Source: Adineta vaga
Taxonomy: Eukaryota; Animalia; Rotifera
Length of the DNA stretch: 64,000 nucleotides
NCBI GenBank assembly: GCA_021613535.1
Contig: CP075496.1
Location: 6,882,001 to 6,946,000, forward strand
Reading direction: 5' to 3'
Shown: in pieces, positions 1 through 8,792 of the stretch
How the letters are laid out: each line of letters begins with the position of its first letter
How positions within the stretch are numbered: the first letter of the stretch is position 1
Notes under the pieces: model-generated
Told to the model about the DNA's origin: nothing
Seen by the model: the letters and a program-made list of their open reading frames with translations, nothing else
Databases searched by the model: none
Translations under genes and position numbers: made by a program

Positions 1-356
1 TGTCATCGAATGTTATCGATGAAAATTTATTGATTGATAAATTATGGGACATGGGTACTGGTTTAACATCAATTGCTGGTGCATGTACAACATCTGAAAC
101 GCAACAATCAACGAATTATTACACTTCAAATGGTGATCAATTTACTGCTGAAGATGAAGCACTTGTACAGACAATATTAAAACAATCAATTTTAACATCT
201 ATGCTTGGATTACCTGAAAATGCATCTAGTGGTGATATTGAACATAGCTATCATCGTATCAGTACTCAATTGAACAAGAAATGGCTGTGTTTCCAACGTG
301 GCTTAGCCGCTCGTGAAAAACTCGAAGCTTTCTATGAGAACTATTTAAAACAATAG
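1..356 (+). CDS. 3' end of a protein with a C-terminal J-domain-like helical module (5' truncated by window edge)
   Basis: The ORF ends with MLGLPENASSGDIEHSYHRISTQLNKKW...AREKLEAFY, resembling the DnaJ 'LGL..A...DI..AY' pattern. The HPD motif is absent. Confidence 0.5.
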   Translation, partial: SSNVIDENLLIDKLWDMGTGLTSIAGACTTSETQQSTNYYTSNGDQFTAEDEALVQTILKQSILTSMLGLPENASSGDIEHSYHRISTQLNKKWLCFQRGLAAREKLEAFYENYLKQ

Positions 357-518
357 AATTAAAAGGAAAACAAAATAACTTTTAATTTGATTTTCAGATA
401 TTTCATAATTCTGATCAATATTTTTTATTTACGTTTCAATAAATATTTGAATTTGAATGACTATATAATGACTTTGACTCATTTTCCTATTCTAGATTAT
501 TTTCTTCAATCGAAAAAC

Positions 519-1248
519 ATGGATAATCAACAGTCGACTAAAATGCCCAAACCATTCGATCAAGATCAAGAAATGAATGCATCAAGTACCGATGGTAATC
601 AACCACATTTCGAATTTCGAGATGATGATCGTTTAAAGCAAGAAGATGATTACCGGCAAGGTTTGTTTTATGAAGAATAATTTTTAATAATTCAAAATAA
701 AAACTTATTTTAGAATTATTAAAAGTTCAAGATGAAATTGTTACATTACGTCAAGTACTTGGAGCTAAATTAAAACGTGAAAGTGAATTGAAAACCTTAC
801 TAGGTGTTGGTTTTGTTGATGATCTAAAACAAGATTGGAATGAAACAGTTCATGATATTAAAGCAACAACAGCATATCAAAAAACTGCTGAAACATTACA
901 AGCTGCATCGGATAAATTAGCTCCGGCTATTCAAACAGTTAATACATCATTCAAATCTCGTCTTGGAACTTTGAAAAGTACATTCTCATTCGAAATTGAT
1001 CTTTATTCGAAATGCTAATATATTTAGATTCAAATTTTTTCAAAACATTTGAAAATACACTTGGTTCAGGTGTGAATGCTGTGAAATCGAAAATGACACC
1101 CTCGAAATCGGCAATGCATTTTAATGGCAATGATGGTAATGAATTTAGTCACGGTGCAACAGGTGGACCTTTAACATCAAGTGTAACACATGATGAACGT
1201 CTAAATTTTGGTGGAGATTTAGATGAAAAGAAAGATTTAACAAAATAA
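519..1248 (+). CDS. TPD52: Tumor protein D52 family coiled-coil protein (3 exons: 519-660, 714-977, 1028-1248)
   Basis: The spliced translation contains ELLKVQDEIVTLRQVLGAKLKRESELKTLLG and TTAYQKT, the D52 signature. Introns are GT-AG. Confidence 0.85.
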
Positions 1249-1721
1249 ATAAAATATTTCTATCTATATCTATTCATCGATAGTAGACAAAGAATGATAA
1301 GAGGAAACATGTTTCTTCTTTCATTATGTGTTCATTTATTTTCTTGGGAACTCTGTCATTTATGCTTCATATATTTATTTATATACATACTTACTCAGTC
1401 GTTTGTCTTGTTACGTGTTATTTATTATCGATATCTCTATTCATTTTCCAATAAGATTAAAATCTGAAAATTCGCATATAAAGCAATCGTTTATCAACAT
1501 TTTCTTTAAGTCATTGTCATTCTTTGAGTTTTTTGTTGTTCCTTTTTTTCATTGGCACTCTTCTATGACTTCATGTCAATTTTATTCTTTTTCTCATTGT
1601 TGTTCTCGTAACGTATTTGTTTTTAATGTTCTCTTCTTCCGTTCTGAATAAAAAAAAAGACCAACAATGATTGAATACGAGAAGAAAAGCATTCTATTTA
1701 TCTTGTTTCCTTATTCTAGAT

Positions 1722-2089
1722 ATGGGTTCTTGGAAATTAGAAGTTTTTCGTAAGTAGATCGAATTATTTCGAATGAATGATTGACCTTTTGTCTTTATTT
1801 AGGTATGGCATGCTATATAAGTTTTCCATTAGCGGCAATGTTTTTATTCAGTCGTCCTGAATTATTCAAAGATCGTGTTATTGCTGCTCGAAAACGATAT
1901 TATCCACCACCAAATCCAGAACGAGTAAATCGACGAATATTGCAATTATTTGCACAAATTAATATATTTTTCTAGGATGAACTAATTCAACAATTAAAAG
2001 AACGTGAACGACTTCGACGAGAAAATGAAGTTTTAGAACAAATGAATCATTTTCAAAGTAAACAAAAAGATTCAATACAATTGAAATGA
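1722..2089 (+). CDS. PET100: Cytochrome c oxidase assembly factor PET100 (3 exons)
   Basis: Spliced MGSWKLEVFRMACYISFPLAAMFLFSRPELF...KRYYPP matches the PET100 N-terminal pattern (KLEIFRMxxYLxFPVxMF). Confidence 0.85.
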
Positions 2090-2186
2090 TCTCTTCGTTT
2101 TTGTTTGCATTGTCATTAGTTAGTAAATTTTGTTTAAGTAGAACATTTGCTTTTTAGATCAAAGAAATTTTCCTTTGAGATAATGT

Positions 2187-3471
2187 ATGGATCCTGCAAC
2201 GAGCGCAGTTATTAATTATTTAGGTATATCATTGTTTTTCATTGATAAATATGAATGAACATGAATAATTTAGAAAAACGAGCTGATATTGATCGAGTTC
2301 ATATTAAAGATAAAAAGGCATGCTCATCAGATGCATTGATTCAATGGGAAGAGGTTAGTTCAATTGATTAAATAAGATGAAAATTAAACAATTTGATTTT
2401 GTTTATAGAAAACATCATGTGAATTACCAGATGATCTGAAAAGATTTTATACAATATCTGATGGATTAGAGGTGCGATGGTCATTTAAAACAGAGAATAC
2501 TAGTAAATACATTCAATAAAGAAATAATTCATTGTATTCATGTTATTTTGTATTTTAAATTTAGAATTATCGTCAACATTTATTGGTAAAATGCATATAA
2601 ATTCTGTGAATGATTTAACAAAAATAGTATTATCGGGATCGAAGCAGATGGCTGTCGATGAATTGAATGATTTTGCCGAGAAAAGTAAAAAAAATCTATC
2701 ATATAAAATAATAGAATTAATAGAATGTACGTTTTTAGATTCACCTCGATTTAATTCACAAGCATGGCATATATTTGAACTTGATTCTTGTGATGGACAA
2801 GGACGTGTTTGTCTCGTTTACAATCCAGTACGTTTTGATGATTAGTCTATGAAACTTTCACAAGAACTAAATAAAATACTCTGACTTGTGAAATTTAATC
2901 TAATGATTTTTCTTCTAGCATCATGAAGTAAGCATTTGGTTTCTGGATCGTTCTTTACACTTCCATCGACTTGCTTCAACATTTACTGATTACTATCGAA
3001 TGCTTCTTCTTCATTGTGGTTTACCCTATTGGCATTATAAATATACGGATATTGGTATTCCACCTTATATTCTACATTGGTATTATACAATATCTCCATC
3101 TCTATTAATCTCTCATCCAAAAGATGATATATCATTATCAAATATCATTCCATTCAATGCTGAAAAAGCATTTCAACAAAATACAAATTCTGCAACAAAG
3201 TTTGTTCTCAGTTAGGTTGCTGCTAGATTTTAATATTTCCTGTTTTAGAAATACTAAGATAATCAACCAACAAACTTCAGCTACTCAAAGTCAACCGTCA
3301 CATTCTGAAGTTGCGGGTAATCGCAGTGCCACACAAAATCCGAAACGTCCAGTTCAACAAATGAAAAGGTTTATTTCATTTATCTGATGATTATCTATCA
3401 TATAGATTCTACTTTATTTTTACAGTATTAATCGATCATCATCCATTCCTCGCTCATTAAACAATCAATGA
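2187..3471 (+). CDS. TPGS2: Tubulin polyglutamylase complex subunit 2
   Basis: Motifs across the exons match TPGS2: WEEKTSCELPDDLKRFY, GKMHINS, FELDSCDGQGRVCLVY, IWFLDRSL, FTDYYRMLLLHCGLPYW. Confidence 0.85.
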
Positions 3472-3559
3472 ATCAAATTTCTTTTTTTTTCTCTTTTCTT
3501 TTCTTTAATCAATCTCGTTTCAGACGTTGTTTTCTACTTAAATTGTTTTACAATTCTAG

Positions 3560-5722
3560 ATGGAAAAAGTCAAAGAACGAACAGGAATCTATCATGAACA
3601 TCAAGATGGTGCACTATGTGGTCAACATGCGTTGAATAATCTTCTACAAAATCCATTTTTTTCAGCTGATGCATTAGCTGATATTGCTCGGTAAATAGAA
3701 TCATTTTTGTTCATTGTAAGCATCAATTTATTCTAATCTCTAGAGCGCTTGATGATGAAGAAACAAGTGTATTATACAATTCATCGTGCGAATCCGAAAA
3801 TGTAGATGGTCCGTATTTTTATTTTTCGAAAAATAGTTTTTTTATAATAGGTTTTCCTACTTTATTAGATACTGGATTTTACAATATTCAAGTGCTACAG
3901 CGAGCTTTAGCTGTCTTTGAACTTGAGTTAGTACCTTTTGGAAGTCAAGATCGTATAGCGAAACAAGCACGTGATTGTCCAGAAAGTATTGCTGCATATA
4001 TATGCCATTTAGGCGCACACTGGTTTACGATAAGACGATTTGGTAGACAATACTTCAATTTAAATTCTTTTTACTATGTTCCAGAAATTATTTCGGGTAT
4101 GACACTTTTGGCATGTATAAGTTTCATACAAGAAAATGGTTATTCTGTATTTATTATCAATGGAAATTTACCATCTTGTATAGCTGATCAACAACTATCA
4201 GCTAATCCTATTGGTGTAGAAGAATATAAATTTTTAACGAGAGATTTACCAAAATTAGTTATGGAAGAAGAACTTTTGGGAAAGATGAGCGAATTAAAGG
4301 GTACTGGAACAATATCTATACCTAGAAATGTATTGATTGCATATAAAAAAAATCCAAATGATCCAGAAATAAAGAGAAAATTAAATTCATTTTTACCTAG
4401 CGGTATAACTATTGATGATGGTATGCCAATGTCAGGTTGTGCATGTTTTCACCGGTATTATCCGTTTTAACCTTTTGTACTTCTAGGTCTACATAAAGGT
4501 AGAATTGGTCAACCGCTAATAGGATGTAGTGATTGTGATATTTGTCGTCGACGATTACAACCTTCAAAAGAGTTTTCGTCATCTCGAAAAACTGACGATT
4601 TATATATGGATGATCTGCGTGACCTAAAGGAAAATTCTACAGTTGTAACTCAACTGATAACCGAATATGTAATTAGTGAACCAGATCCTCAAAACCAAAA
4701 TAAATCACGTCAGCATAGAAACATAAGGGCTGGGATACTTGTAAATTTCCCTTCATCAGAAATTGATAGAGCAGATAACAATTACAAAGAACAGAGGCTA
4801 AATGAAGCAATATTGATGATACAAAAGGAAAGAGAATTTATGGATCAAAAACTTCAAGAGATGCAGACATTATTAAATCTGACAGACATGGATACTGAAG
4901 AAGATCGTTCTTTTTACGAGAAATATCCAGAAGTACTATATCAAAAACTATTGGATGCTACTATTGCTGCTAGTTTGCTCAGTAATAATTCCACAACAAA
5001 TGAACTTGAACAAATGCCCGAACGTATTCCATTACCAGCACCAACCAATTCGCAACCAGTAACACCGGTAAAATCCTCTTCACAATCATCGGTAGAAGCG
5101 CCATCATCATTCTCCACTAATACAGAATCGTTTCAACAAAGCGATACAAATTCATCAGAGTCAATATCCACAAGTTTACCACCCATACCAAAAGATACAC
5201 ATTCGGTAGAATCCCTACTACCAAATCTTTTACCTTTAACTAATACAGATGCAAAATCATCAGAAAACGTAGAACCATCAACAGTAGCAGAATCTCAAAA
5301 TGAACCAACACTTTCACCAAAAGATACACATTCGCTTTCATCACCTGCAGAAGATCCAGACAATATAAAAGCATTGAGTATCGAAGGTAATTCATTAATT
5401 AGTATTATTGTACTAAGTATCGCAACTACAATCCAATGCTTTTCTTCACATTTGAAAGTACAAAATAGAGTATTTAAATATCTATGATCGGTATTCATCT
5501 AACACTTTATCAATTAAATTATATTGAAAACAAAAAGATATGTGAATTTAAGATATTTCTAGAAAAATAGTAGCAAGCTGATCATAACCATTATTTATGA
5601 CTAATCTTTTAGAACATTTTTATTTGATAGTTTTTTCTTTAGAACTTCGACAACGTCGTCTTCGACTATATGGTAATAGAGATAGATCAATCATTTCCGT
5701 AGTATCGAATTCCAATGATTAA
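3560..5722 (+). CDS. ATXN3: Ataxin-3-like Josephin deubiquitinase
   Basis: Catalytic triad residues are present: IYHEHQDGALCGQHALNNLLQ (Cys), AHWFTIRRFG (His), FNLNS (Asn). There is a UIM-like LLDATIAASL. The last exon (5643-5722) completes a VCP-binding-motif-like EELRQRRLRLY. Confidence 0.85.
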
Positions 5723-5874
5723 ATCATTGTCTCACCACTTATGAATGAACAATGTGATATTTTTTACAAATACTTTTGTTTTAGACATAATTTTTAATAA
5801 TCACATATATATATATATATCAATCCTGAAAGATTTTTTTCTAGTGTGTAATCAAAACATATTATTTTTAGATT

Positions 5875-7427
5875 ATGTCATCATCTCGTTCCAATCGTAT
5901 TCGCTGTTTAATAAGTCGTCGACCAGAAAGTTCTATTGAACGTTTATCATTGCATTCATGTTTATATCATCTACGTCCTTATTGTTCATTATCAACATCT
6001 GCAACAATCAATGAAATATGTCTTCGACGTTTACTTAAATCCAATTATTCATGTCAATTTCAAGAATCTGATCACATATCCGAACAGAAATTATTACCAA
6101 ATAAATCGACATTTATTCTTGGTCGTTATATGTTAACATTACAATTAAATACTCTACATCTTTATGTCATTGACAAACATCGTCTAACATTACTTGGAGA
6201 AGATGTATGTACGATAAAGATTGTTTTTATTGGAATATGTACATACAGTCATTTTCAAAAACGAAATTTTGCTAAACAAGATGGATTTATTTTAATGACA
6301 GCTGATCAACGACTACTTTTATATGATTTTAAATTAAAAACACGTATGCCAACATCTGGAATAAATTTTCAATGTGAAATACCAGTGAAATTTCTTGAAA
6401 AATCATTTGACTATCATGAACAGAATCATATGATATCCATACATACTAGGCATAAACAACGATCACATTTATTTATTATTTTCCGAATATGGCCACAATG
6501 GTTAAGTTATGTCTTTTTAGTTGAACCACATATATTCGGTACTGATCTTAAACAAGCAACGATTACGCACGAGTTATTGATTGTACAGAACCAACGCAAT
6601 AGGTAAAAATATCTAATACTATCATAAACATTTCATTGTTTTTCTTCTTTTCTAGTTGTAATCTCTATTCCCTTCATACTATTCTCGATGAATATACAAT
6701 CAAATGTCATTCATTATCTGATCATCTCGATGAACTTTTACCAGTCAATGTTGTCATCAATTCCTGTCCACCATGTTTATTTACATTCAATTGTGAACGT
6801 CCTTTATTCGATTATGCTTTTTGCAGTACTCAACATTTTCTTACACGTATCAATGAAGATTATTTTGTTTTACATATTAATAATGATTTTACACCAGTTT
6901 TCAATGGTCATTTAAAACGCTCATGGACAGATAATTTATCACCGAATAATCAAGTTTATTTTATTGATACAACTTATCATCATGATTGTATTATTGATAT
7001 TCGAGAATCAATCGTACATGTTTGGCAATTAATACATGATGAATCAACTAAAGTGAAACATTTATATAAAATTGATGATGGAATTGGGTGTTTAGAGCCA
7101 GCGCATGATCGTCATATAACACGTTATGGTCGACAAACAACACCTCAACAAGCTTTAGATTTATCAACGACTGTTGTAACTGATCATTATTTTGATACCT
7201 ATAATAATATATTAACATTACTTTTTGAATCTGAGGTATCAGAAATGGTAATCATACGTCTTATTGAACATCCGATTGGTGTTTCTCGTCAAGATATTAA
7301 ATTTAAAAAGAATAATAAACAAAATCAATTAAGAATTATGCATGAGCAAGATAAATTAATTGTTCAAGAACTTAGTTGTCATACAGTTACACTTCGAATA
7401 TTTACTTTACAACGTTCAAAATGCTAA
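5875..7427 (+). CDS. DCAF17: DDB1- and CUL4-associated factor 17-like (2 exons)
   Basis: FIIFRIWP...HIFGTDLKQATITHELLIV..CNLYSLHTI, LPVNVVINSCPPCLF and ITRYGR align with recalled DCAF17 blocks (AVFRVLP..IFGNVTDATLSHGILIV; IPCNIKITDMPPLLF; VTASGR). Confidence 0.7.
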
Positions 7428-7861
7428 TTAAACATGTGTAGAATTGAAATTGTTCACATTTGGATCTTTATTTTCTTTTGTACGCAATCATCTTCTACTA
7501 CAATAAATTTTATATCTGTGAGAATAGTAAATACTCGTATTTTCTCTCGTAAATAAAGATATCTGATACAGTTAATTACTTTTCGATCGTCCAATTCCAA
7601 TTCTATCGAAGATCAACATTCATTCTGTCAATTGTATCACTATACTAATGAATGCAGAATATTCATTTATTTTTTTTTTGTATCGAAGTATACTTGGACA
7701 ATCTTTATACAATTGAATGTCATGACATTCTGAAAATATGACTTTGGTGAAAGATTTTATTTCTTTTTCTGCAAGTCAGTAAAGAATGATTAAAATGAAT
7801 ACAAAGAAGGGTGTATATAGTCTATATGGAATGTAATTCGAAGATCGAATTAAATCATCAT

Positions 7862-8792
7862 TTATGATGTTGAAAGAAGTTTTTGTACAAATTCTATAAA
7901 TAATAAATAGATGAATAGAAGATTAAATAGGTTTCTTCATTACCTTGATAATCAAGTTTACCATCTCGGTTAACATCAGCCTAAAAGATAAAATCATTAA
8001 AAAAAATATTTGATATAGTTTGAAATAGACCTCTCTCATCATATCTTCTAATTCTTCTTGATTTAATTTTTCACCCATGTTTAACATGACCTTGAAAATA
8101 GAGAAGTATACGTAACAATAATCAGAACTATGAAAATAAACCTGTTTTAATTCATTGATAGTGATAAATCCTGAATTATCTCGGTCAAAAAGTCGAAAAG
8201 CTTCACGTAATTCTTGTTCTTGATCGCGTTCATGCCAATGTTTACTCATAAAAGTAACAAAGTCTTGAAAATCTAATCGTTGATTACCTGAAGAAGAAAA
8301 ACGAACTTTCTTCGCATCAAACTCATATGTCCATATTTCACTTACCATTTTTATCCACTTCAGCAATAAGATCAGCAATTTCTTTATTTGTTGGATTTAA
8401 TCCTAAGGATCGCATTACTTGTCTAAACAGAATTAATAAAAATGTTTGTTTATTTTTCTGCATTCTGATTTCTTGACCTAGTCTCAATGTCAAAAAGAAA
8501 TATTTCCTAAAATTTGTCCCTTGAATAAAAGAGAAATCTGCAGAATCTATTCTAGAAGAATGAATAGAAGTCGAAAAATATTACTCACCCTATTTCATTT
8601 GCATCAATACTACCATCTCCATTCTTATCGAATAATTCAAATACATGTCGAAATTCTTGAAATATACAAATCAAAATTCATTCTTTTCTTTTATTCTATT
8701 CTCTTTTACCTTCAGTTTTTGCAGCGGAAAATGTACTCTAAAGAATAGATTGCCATTATAATTACATTTCAATTGTTCAAAATTCTTACCAT
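7862..8792 (-). CDS. Calmodulin-like four-EF-hand protein (~149 aa)
   Basis: The ATG is immediately followed by an intron, as in calmodulin genes. EF loops are DKNGDGSIDANE, DKNGNQRLDFQD, DRDNSGFITINE and DVNRDGKLDYQE. It is too divergent to be canonical calmodulin. Confidence 0.85.

Follow-up and report, generated by a model that had tools for sequence, protein, structure and literature searches.

The current analysis concerns six consecutive genes on the + strand of the bdelloid rotifer Adineta vaga, located within the first 7,427 nt of a 64,000-nt stretch of contig CP075496.1 (contig 4, 6,882,001-6,946,000; the window; coordinates are positions in this window unless another sequence is named, and genes 1 to 6 are numbered 5' to 3'). 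Together with an ITFG1-like gene located upstream, probably the seventh member, they form a head-to-tail array, which in our judgment is likely to be an operon resolved by spliced leader (SL) trans-splicing, of the Ciona type that contains no intercistronic DNA. The original prediction had proposed a polycistronic unit with SL addition at the AG dinucleotides ahead of the downstream genes. An SL tail at gene 2 and spliced RNA crossing three of the five junctions agree with this proposal, whereas its nematode-type spacers are not found and the unit perhaps begins with the ITFG1-like gene.

Acceptor sites and message ends

Upon rereading of the sequence, the stop codons of genes 1 to 6 lie at 354-356, 1246-1248, 2087-2089, 3469-3471, 5720-5722 and 7425-7427 and the start ATGs of genes 2 to 6 at 519, 1722, 2187, 3560 and 5875, all on the + strand. 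The stop-to-ATG spacers of 162, 473, 97, 88 and 152 nt given by the original prediction for junctions 1-2, 2-3, 3-4, 4-5 and 5-6 are therefore exact. By chance, six consecutive genes would share one strand in ~1/32 of cases. The five pyrimidine-rich AGs are likewise present where they had been placed, at 494-495, 1718-1719, 2156-2157, 3558-3559 and 5870-5871, which leaves 23, 2, 29, 0 and 3 nt between the AG and the ATG of genes 2 to 6, respectively. Under a strict acceptor rule (a pyrimidine at -3 and at least six pyrimidines in eight positions), four of the five qualify. For all ATGs of the window, a strict acceptor is found at most 30 nt upstream in 12% and at most 3 nt upstream in 2.5%; an upstream AG ahead of five of five genes, in four cases a strict one, goes far beyond what chance would give. 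The two shortest spacers are indeed U-rich, with a T content of 48% (97 nt) and 56% (88 nt) vs 35% in the whole window. The features of the array are as follows (UTR, untranslated region).

1..356, +: gene 1, 3' part, no family assigned; open frame L008:4902-6356, RNA contig X1 rec1 covers 250-463
438-443, +: AATAAA of gene 1, whose RNA 3' ends are contig ends at 463 (X1) and ~468 (X12); RNA contigs and sequence
494-495, +: SL trans-splice acceptor AG of gene 2; RNA, SL tail on X1 contig rec2
519..1248, +: gene 2, TPD52-like, exons 519-660, 714-977 and 1028-1248; Pfam TPD52 2e-11, introns confirmed in 3-4 runs
1647, +: AATAAA of gene 2, furthest 3' contig reach 1658; RNA contigs, 3'UTR of at least ~410 nt
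1718-1719, +: predicted SL acceptor AG of gene 3; position conserved in Adineta relatives and Rotaria
1722..2089, +: gene 3, PET100, exons 1722-1749, 1803-1924 and 1976-2089; Pfam Pet100 1.4e-10, introns from RNA contigs
2156-2158, +: junction 3-4, where the start of the PET100 poly(A) coincides with the predicted acceptor AG of gene 4; RNA contigs X1 and X2
2187..3471, +: gene 4, TPGS2 (SMI1_KNR4 fold), eight exons; seven introns RNA-confirmed, orthologue matches
3558-3559, +: junction 4-5, predicted acceptor AG of gene 5, abutting its ATG; sequence, with the 3' end of the X1 gene 4 contig at 3558
3560..5722, +: gene 5, ataxin-3-like (Josephin), exons 3560-3690, 3744-3808, 3869-4435, 4487-5386 and 5643-5722; Pfam Josephin 3.5e-21
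5870-5872, +: junction 5-6, where the start of the ataxin-3 poly(A) coincides with the predicted acceptor AG of gene 6; RNA contigs, acceptor conserved in Rotaria
5875..7427, +: gene 6, DCAF17-like, exons 5875-6602 and 6656-7427, AATAAA at 7502; intron from sequence

For RNA evidence, the contigs of four public runs from four studies were aligned to window positions 250-6200. All four runs are spliced RNA. They contain 15 GT..AG joints, every one an internal intron, and none of these joints is a cis-spliced 5'UTR exon using any of the five AGs. Thirteen of the 15 introns measure 49-62 nt, which upholds the ~50 nt taken by the original prediction as the local norm; the remaining two measure 91 and 256 nt.

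SL trans-splicing in rotifers has been known since 2005. The published rotifer SL is GGCTTATTACAACTTACCAAGAG (PMC3795323), and contig X1 rec2 carries the non-genomic CTTACCAAG immediately before position 494, which together with the AG makes up the last 11 nt of this leader. Because the SL tail stands there, gene 2 (TPD52) is trans-spliced at the predicted AG. SL RNA genes with a splice donor, which an SL-resolved operon requires, are present in the genome (100.8 Mb, six contigs), where the SL sequence followed by GT occurs in 42 copies, many in divergent pairs. One SL sequence was found in all 42 copies; other SLs were not searched for exhaustively. The divergent pairs lie ~130-160 nt apart (e.g. 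L001:1380-1700), with clusters on contig 5 at 9.88-9.93 and 10.91-10.93 Mb. All copies found begin TGCTTATT, such that the genome does not encode the initial G of the published SL there.

The 3' ends of the upstream messages can be located exactly at two junctions. On the X1 contig of PET100, position 2158 is followed by 15 A that form a loose end; on the ataxin-3 contig (X1 rec4), 10 such A follow position 5872. These two places coincide with the predicted acceptor AGs of genes 4 and 6, respectively. Since the genomic base after each AG (2156-2157 and 5870-5871) is itself A, both mRNAs end exactly at the acceptor AG, in the form ...TTTTTAG plus poly(A). With spacers of 97 and 152 nt, two such coincidences would arise by chance with a probability of roughly 1e-4. 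At junction 4-5, record arithmetic places the end of the TPGS2 contig X1 rec3 at 3558, no more than 1-2 nt from the AG of gene 5.

The spacers are mostly the 3'UTRs of the upstream genes, because poly(A) or contig ends sit at or near the next acceptor AG. The DNA included in neither message amounts to ~30 nt at junction 1-2, ~45-60 nt at junction 2-3, and 0 nt at junctions 3-4, 5-6 and probably 4-5. The very short same-strand spacing expected of an operon is found both from stop to ATG (88-473 nt) and from the end of a message to the next acceptor (0-~60 nt). The nematode-like intercistronic regions of ~100 nt envisaged by the original prediction had to be abandoned, as poly(A) is reached at the AG or ~30 and 45-60 nt before it; neither the intercistronic RNA of ~100 nt nor, among the 42 SL copies, a specialized SL2 as in the C. 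elegans SL2-type operon was found here. An upstream poly(A) abutting the downstream AG, as in Ciona, is seen at junctions 3-4 and 5-6 (with the gene 4 contig end at 3558), and not at 1-2 or 2-3. Another Ciona-type trait, the absence of a canonical AAUAAA before the upstream poly(A), is shared by the three zero-spacer junctions: neither AATAAA nor ATTAAA occurs in the spacers 2090-2186, 3472-3559 and 5723-5874. An AGTAAA is located at 2122 in the PET100-TPGS2 spacer.

Continuous RNA connects genes 3 to 6. With introns removed, X2 rec10 is unbroken from 1976 to 2217 over junction 3-4, X12 rec6 from 3424 to 3689 over junction 4-5, and X2 rec13 and X12 rec8 from 5641 to 6200 over junction 5-6. All of these contigs reach beyond their junction by more than 31 nt in either direction, and by record arithmetic X12 rec6 spans 1829-4329, which comprises parts of three genes. 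RNA spanning two or more cistrons, a further mark of an operon, is thus found in contigs, as opposed to single molecules. The bridging contigs could conceivably be assembly chimeras or genomic DNA in RNA libraries, with the loose ends as noise, considering that the RNA nature of the runs is a guess and that contigs alone are at hand. We regard this as highly improbable: the bridging contigs are free of any introns on both sides of the junctions, the pattern recurs across independent studies and species, and the loose ends turn out to be an SL tail and poly(A) at meaningful positions.

Gene identities and counterparts in other bdelloids

In the homology searches, spliced models were queried exon by exon, such that the Pfam evidence for TPD52, Pet100, Josephin and DCAF17 derives from single-exon searches; full-length proteins were taken from the natural RNA contigs L009, L010, L023 and L024. 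The nearest named proteins belong to Adineta and Rotaria. Among the names that had been proposed, TPD52, PET100, TPGS2 and ATXN3 stand. The full-length orthologue of gene 4 (P0015, from a natural RNA contig) matches vertebrate TPGS2 at ~1e-41 as well as Pfam SMI1_KNR4. DCAF17 is a weak Pfam match here (E 0.0075), and the syntenic Rotaria product is recorded as DCAF17. The label "J-like" for gene 1 was rejected, as it has no match in Pfam or PDB. Gene 4 is single-copy in A. vaga. An out-of-frame ATG 4 nt ahead of its start (window 2183-2215; aATGtATGG) opens a 10-codon overlapping upstream open reading frame (uORF), and the motif ataatgtATGGAT at the TPGS2 start is common to Rotaria sp. Silwood1 and the L043 species and absent from those of L009 and L024. 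Within gene 5, the last intron (window 5387-5642, 256 nt) is the longest of the array. It is located shortly before junction 5-6, and run X12 (depth 8) retains it in part. Between A. vaga and Rotaria, conservation extends over the initial ~45 nt of the ataxin-3 3'UTR (window 5723-5770 vs L011:16530-16580; ..atgaatgaacaatgtgata..), an unusual finding for a UTR across such a distance.

Parts of the same arrangement are seen in RNA contigs of other bdelloids. The Logan RNA contig L010 begins with CCAAGAG, the tail of the SL, encodes TPD52 and continues through a 238-nt spacer into ...ttctttcag|ATG of PET100. L009 begins at the first base after the orthologous PET100 acceptor AG and reaches TPGS2 by way of PET100 and a 106-nt spacer (the genome of its species is L021). 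L024 and L026, from a Rotaria-like species, begin with CAAGAG and AAGAG ahead of TPGS2, while L043, a metatranscriptome contig of a third species, carries a near-complete SL at this position. The L043 leader (positions 4-26) has one extra A (..TTACAAACTTACC..), either a variant leader of that species or an assembly error. L023, L024 and L041 bridge TPGS2 to ataxin-3 through an 83-nt spacer ending in ...tgttttag|ATG; L041 had been considered as an SL-tagged 5' end of ataxin-3 and was rejected as such, having turned out to be a bridging contig. Taken together, SL-tagged orthologues in other bdelloids comprise the TPD52 and TPGS2 mRNAs, and two-gene contigs comprise TPD52-PET100, PET100-TPGS2 and TPGS2-ataxin-3. 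Contigs L017-L022 were likewise rejected as RNA, since they are colinear genomic sequences, introns included, from related Adineta species, and were used for junction comparison only. The gene 2 AATAAA, ~70 nt ahead of the PET100 acceptor, is kept in five other bdelloid sequences.

The genomes of Rotaria sp. Silwood1 encode ITFG1, gene 1, TPD52, Pet100, TPGS2, Josephin and DCAF17 in this order on a single strand; the spacers measure 103 and 80 nt, and the AG positions are those of A. vaga. Conservation of gene order, which had been put forward as a check on the operon, is therefore found in Rotaria together with that of the AGs. Fused gene models also exist in public annotations (L011-L016; P0027, P0028): gene 1 is joined to TPD52 in Rotaria (716-738 aa), and Pet100 to TPGS2 in A. 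ricciae (352-365 aa). Within the A. vaga genome, an ohnologous block (L040; G000:C1:6136501-6146500, - strand) has kept ITFG1, TPD52 and ataxin-3 and lost gene 1, PET100, TPGS2 and DCAF17. Its surviving genes retain acceptor-like AGs 32 and 21 nt ahead of their ATGs, and the comparison with this block decides neither way.

Extent of the unit and alternative explanations

Two further features delimit the array.

L008:4241-4271 (probable exon 1, 31 nt) and from L008:4768 (exon 2), +: 5' part of gene 1, outside the window, with a 496-nt intron between them; from sequence only
7923..8375, -: convergent EF-hand (AIF-1-like) gene, bounding the same-strand array on its 3' side; Pfam EF-hand, same neighbor in Rotaria

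The convergent gene closes the array downstream. Upstream, the ITFG1-like gene lies on the same strand, ends 184 nt before the probable ATG of gene 1 and has its own AG 5 nt ahead of its ATG; beyond it extend ~2.4 kb without open reading frames (ORFs), back to AMD1. Judging by these features, the ITFG1-like gene may be the seventh, and first, member of the unit. An acceptor-like AG can be read in the sequence ahead of gene 1 as well, at L008:4205-4206, and a minimal ATG-TAA uORF follows it. Membership of both ITFG1 and gene 1 is a matter of inference, as is a single promoter for the whole unit, for which the ORF-free ~2.4 kb and the lack of free DNA between cistrons are a structural hint. The probable first intron of gene 1 (L008:4272-4767, window -1728 to -1233) is, at 496 nt, ~10x the local norm and directly follows the 31-nt exon; it could house an internal promoter.

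Based upon these features, the following sequence of events can be proposed. Firstly, RNA polymerase II would read through several + strand genes, very probably genes 3-6 and probably the whole row, from a start that may lie in the ORF-free region upstream of the ITFG1-like gene. Secondly, the downstream messages would acquire their 5' ends by trans-splicing of the 22-23-nt rotifer SL to the AG located 0-29 nt before the ATG, presumably also at genes 3, 5 and 6 of A. vaga. Thirdly, the upstream 3' end would form ~30-60 nt before the acceptor AG at junctions 1-2 and 2-3, which have AATAAA, and exactly at the acceptor AG at junctions 3-4, 5-6 and probably 4-5, which do not. At the zero-spacer junctions, one precursor would probably yield either the upstream or the downstream mRNA, or else splice cleavage itself would create the upstream 3' end. 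A broader proposition, that bdelloids run many genes as zero-intercistronic operons in which trans-splicing cleavage rather than the cleavage/polyadenylation machinery makes the polyadenylated 3' end, is speculative and in our view doubtful.

Several observations weigh against a single operon. In A. vaga contigs, the SL is seen at one of the five sites (gene 2), as 9+2 nt only, and metagenome pattern scans for the SL joined to the DCAF17 start or the PET100 start gave 0 matches. No contig bridges junctions 1-2 or 2-3 in the four A. vaga runs, and a two-gene contig is not a single read and can merge overlapping RNAs. Contig depth differs up to ~8-fold between genes, although depth is unsuitable for ranking genes. 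Promoters may reside inside upstream genes or introns, candidates being the introns of 496 nt in gene 1 and of 256 nt in gene 5. The Rotaria synteny extends to the convergent neighbor, such that order alone is no proof of operon constraint. The ohnologous TPD52 and ataxin-3 genes persist with spacers of ~640-755 nt and are consequently viable without tight packing. Lastly, the cluster is absent around the Josephin gene of Seison nebaliae, which has unrelated neighbors, though that gene may be a paralogue.

Some of these points would also suit separate transcription units in a compact genome, in which the promoter of each gene is buried in the preceding one, the SL trims a short outron, and bridging RNA is merely outron or read-through. 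Such an arrangement would account for gene depths several-fold apart and for ohnologues standing 640-755 nt from their upstream neighbors, and it gains from the inferred status of the common promoter and from the ability of bridging contigs to merge overlapping RNAs. We nevertheless consider it unlikely. At junctions 3-4, 5-6 and probably 4-5, a single AG serves both as upstream poly(A) site and as downstream acceptor; therefore, no precursor of the downstream gene can lack the end of the gene before it. The same shared-AG argument is accepted for Ciona, where Satou et al. (PMC1488885) reasoned that read-through of independent genes cannot account for such junctions. Separate units would furthermore need five promoters, all inside coding genes, and multi-gene spliced contigs are found in at least three species.

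A compromise would divide the row into two or three shorter operons with internal promoters, a situation common among the operons of C. elegans; ITFG1 alone, genes 1-2 and genes 3-6 would be one such division. Bridging RNA restricted in A. vaga to junctions 3-4, 4-5 and 5-6, the AATAAA and real gaps of ~30 and 45-60 nt at junctions 1-2 and 2-3, and the unusually long first intron of gene 1 could all be understood in this way. However, the contig with a 5' SL tail from another bdelloid runs from TPD52 into PET100, and a promoter and an outron would not fit together into the gaps at junctions 1-2 and 2-3; we consequently rate this subdivision somewhat lower still than fully separate units. The SL-resolved operon without intercistronic DNA remains the reading that we prefer.

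If this reading is correct, polycistronic transcription in animals would extend to a further phylum, Rotifera, the gene fusions among bdelloid annotations would be accounted for, and the interpretation of promoters and expression would change in a model of asexuality and desiccation tolerance. Next to Ciona, bdelloids would also provide a second case of one AG being used for upstream polyadenylation as well as for downstream splicing. Should trans-splicing cleavage make the 3' ends, they would offer a second independent animal lineage for testing an idea raised for Ciona and never settled.

Relation to known operons

Rotifer operons were listed as "ND" (not determined) by Marletaz et al. 2008 (PMC2481426) and as "not reported" by Wenzel et al. 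2021 (PMC7986045), and our search of the searchable literature found no description of them. A 2025 chaetognath paper (PMC12460157) lists rotifers among the lineages with trans-splicing and operonic transcription, with no rotifer data given. In the chaetognath Paraspadella gotoi, this paper assigns 18% of genes to SL-resolved operons, defined by a spacing of <250 nt, with no operon-specific SL. P. gotoi is a gnathiferan relative of rotifers, and its SLs differ from that of A. vaga. If many bdelloid genes were indeed run as operons, the question would arise of whether operons are old within Gnathifera (rotifers and chaetognaths).

Among nematodes, the SL2-type operons of C. elegans share with the array a polycistronic precursor (here deduced from contigs), SL trans-splicing of downstream genes (here seen at gene 2) and the grouping of unrelated genes. 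They are distinct in having ~100 nt of intercistronic RNA and a dedicated SL2, whereas the gaps here measure 0-~60 nt and one SL was found in 42 copies. The C. elegans SL1-type operons, a minority lacking intercistronic sequence, are closer, as they, too, have a poly(A) site directly next to the trans-splice site and employ the general SL; in the passages of PMC1488885 that deal with them, the characterized cases keep AATAAA, unlike the zero-spacer junctions here. The operons of the tunicate Oikopleura dioica, as outlined in the same source, have intercistronic regions of 23-30 nt and a single SL, similar to the ~30 nt of junction 1-2. Their upstream cistrons are described there as lacking AATAAA, in contrast to junctions 1-2 and 2-3 here, and they belong to another lineage.

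The closest parallel is found in the operons of Ciona intestinalis (Satou et al. 2006, PMC1488885), in which upstream mRNAs end in AG plus poly(A) at the downstream acceptor, mostly without AATAAA. Both systems combine same-strand genes, upstream mRNAs with AG plus poly(A) at the SL acceptor of the next gene (here a predicted one), a frequent lack of AATAAA in upstream cistrons and one SL (here seen at gene 2), and the unresolved two-gene cDNAs of Ciona have their counterpart in the two-gene contigs described here. Despite these parallels, Ciona belongs to another phylum and its SL is unrelated, while junctions 1-2 and 2-3 of A. vaga keep AATAAA as well as gaps of ~30 and 45-60 nt.

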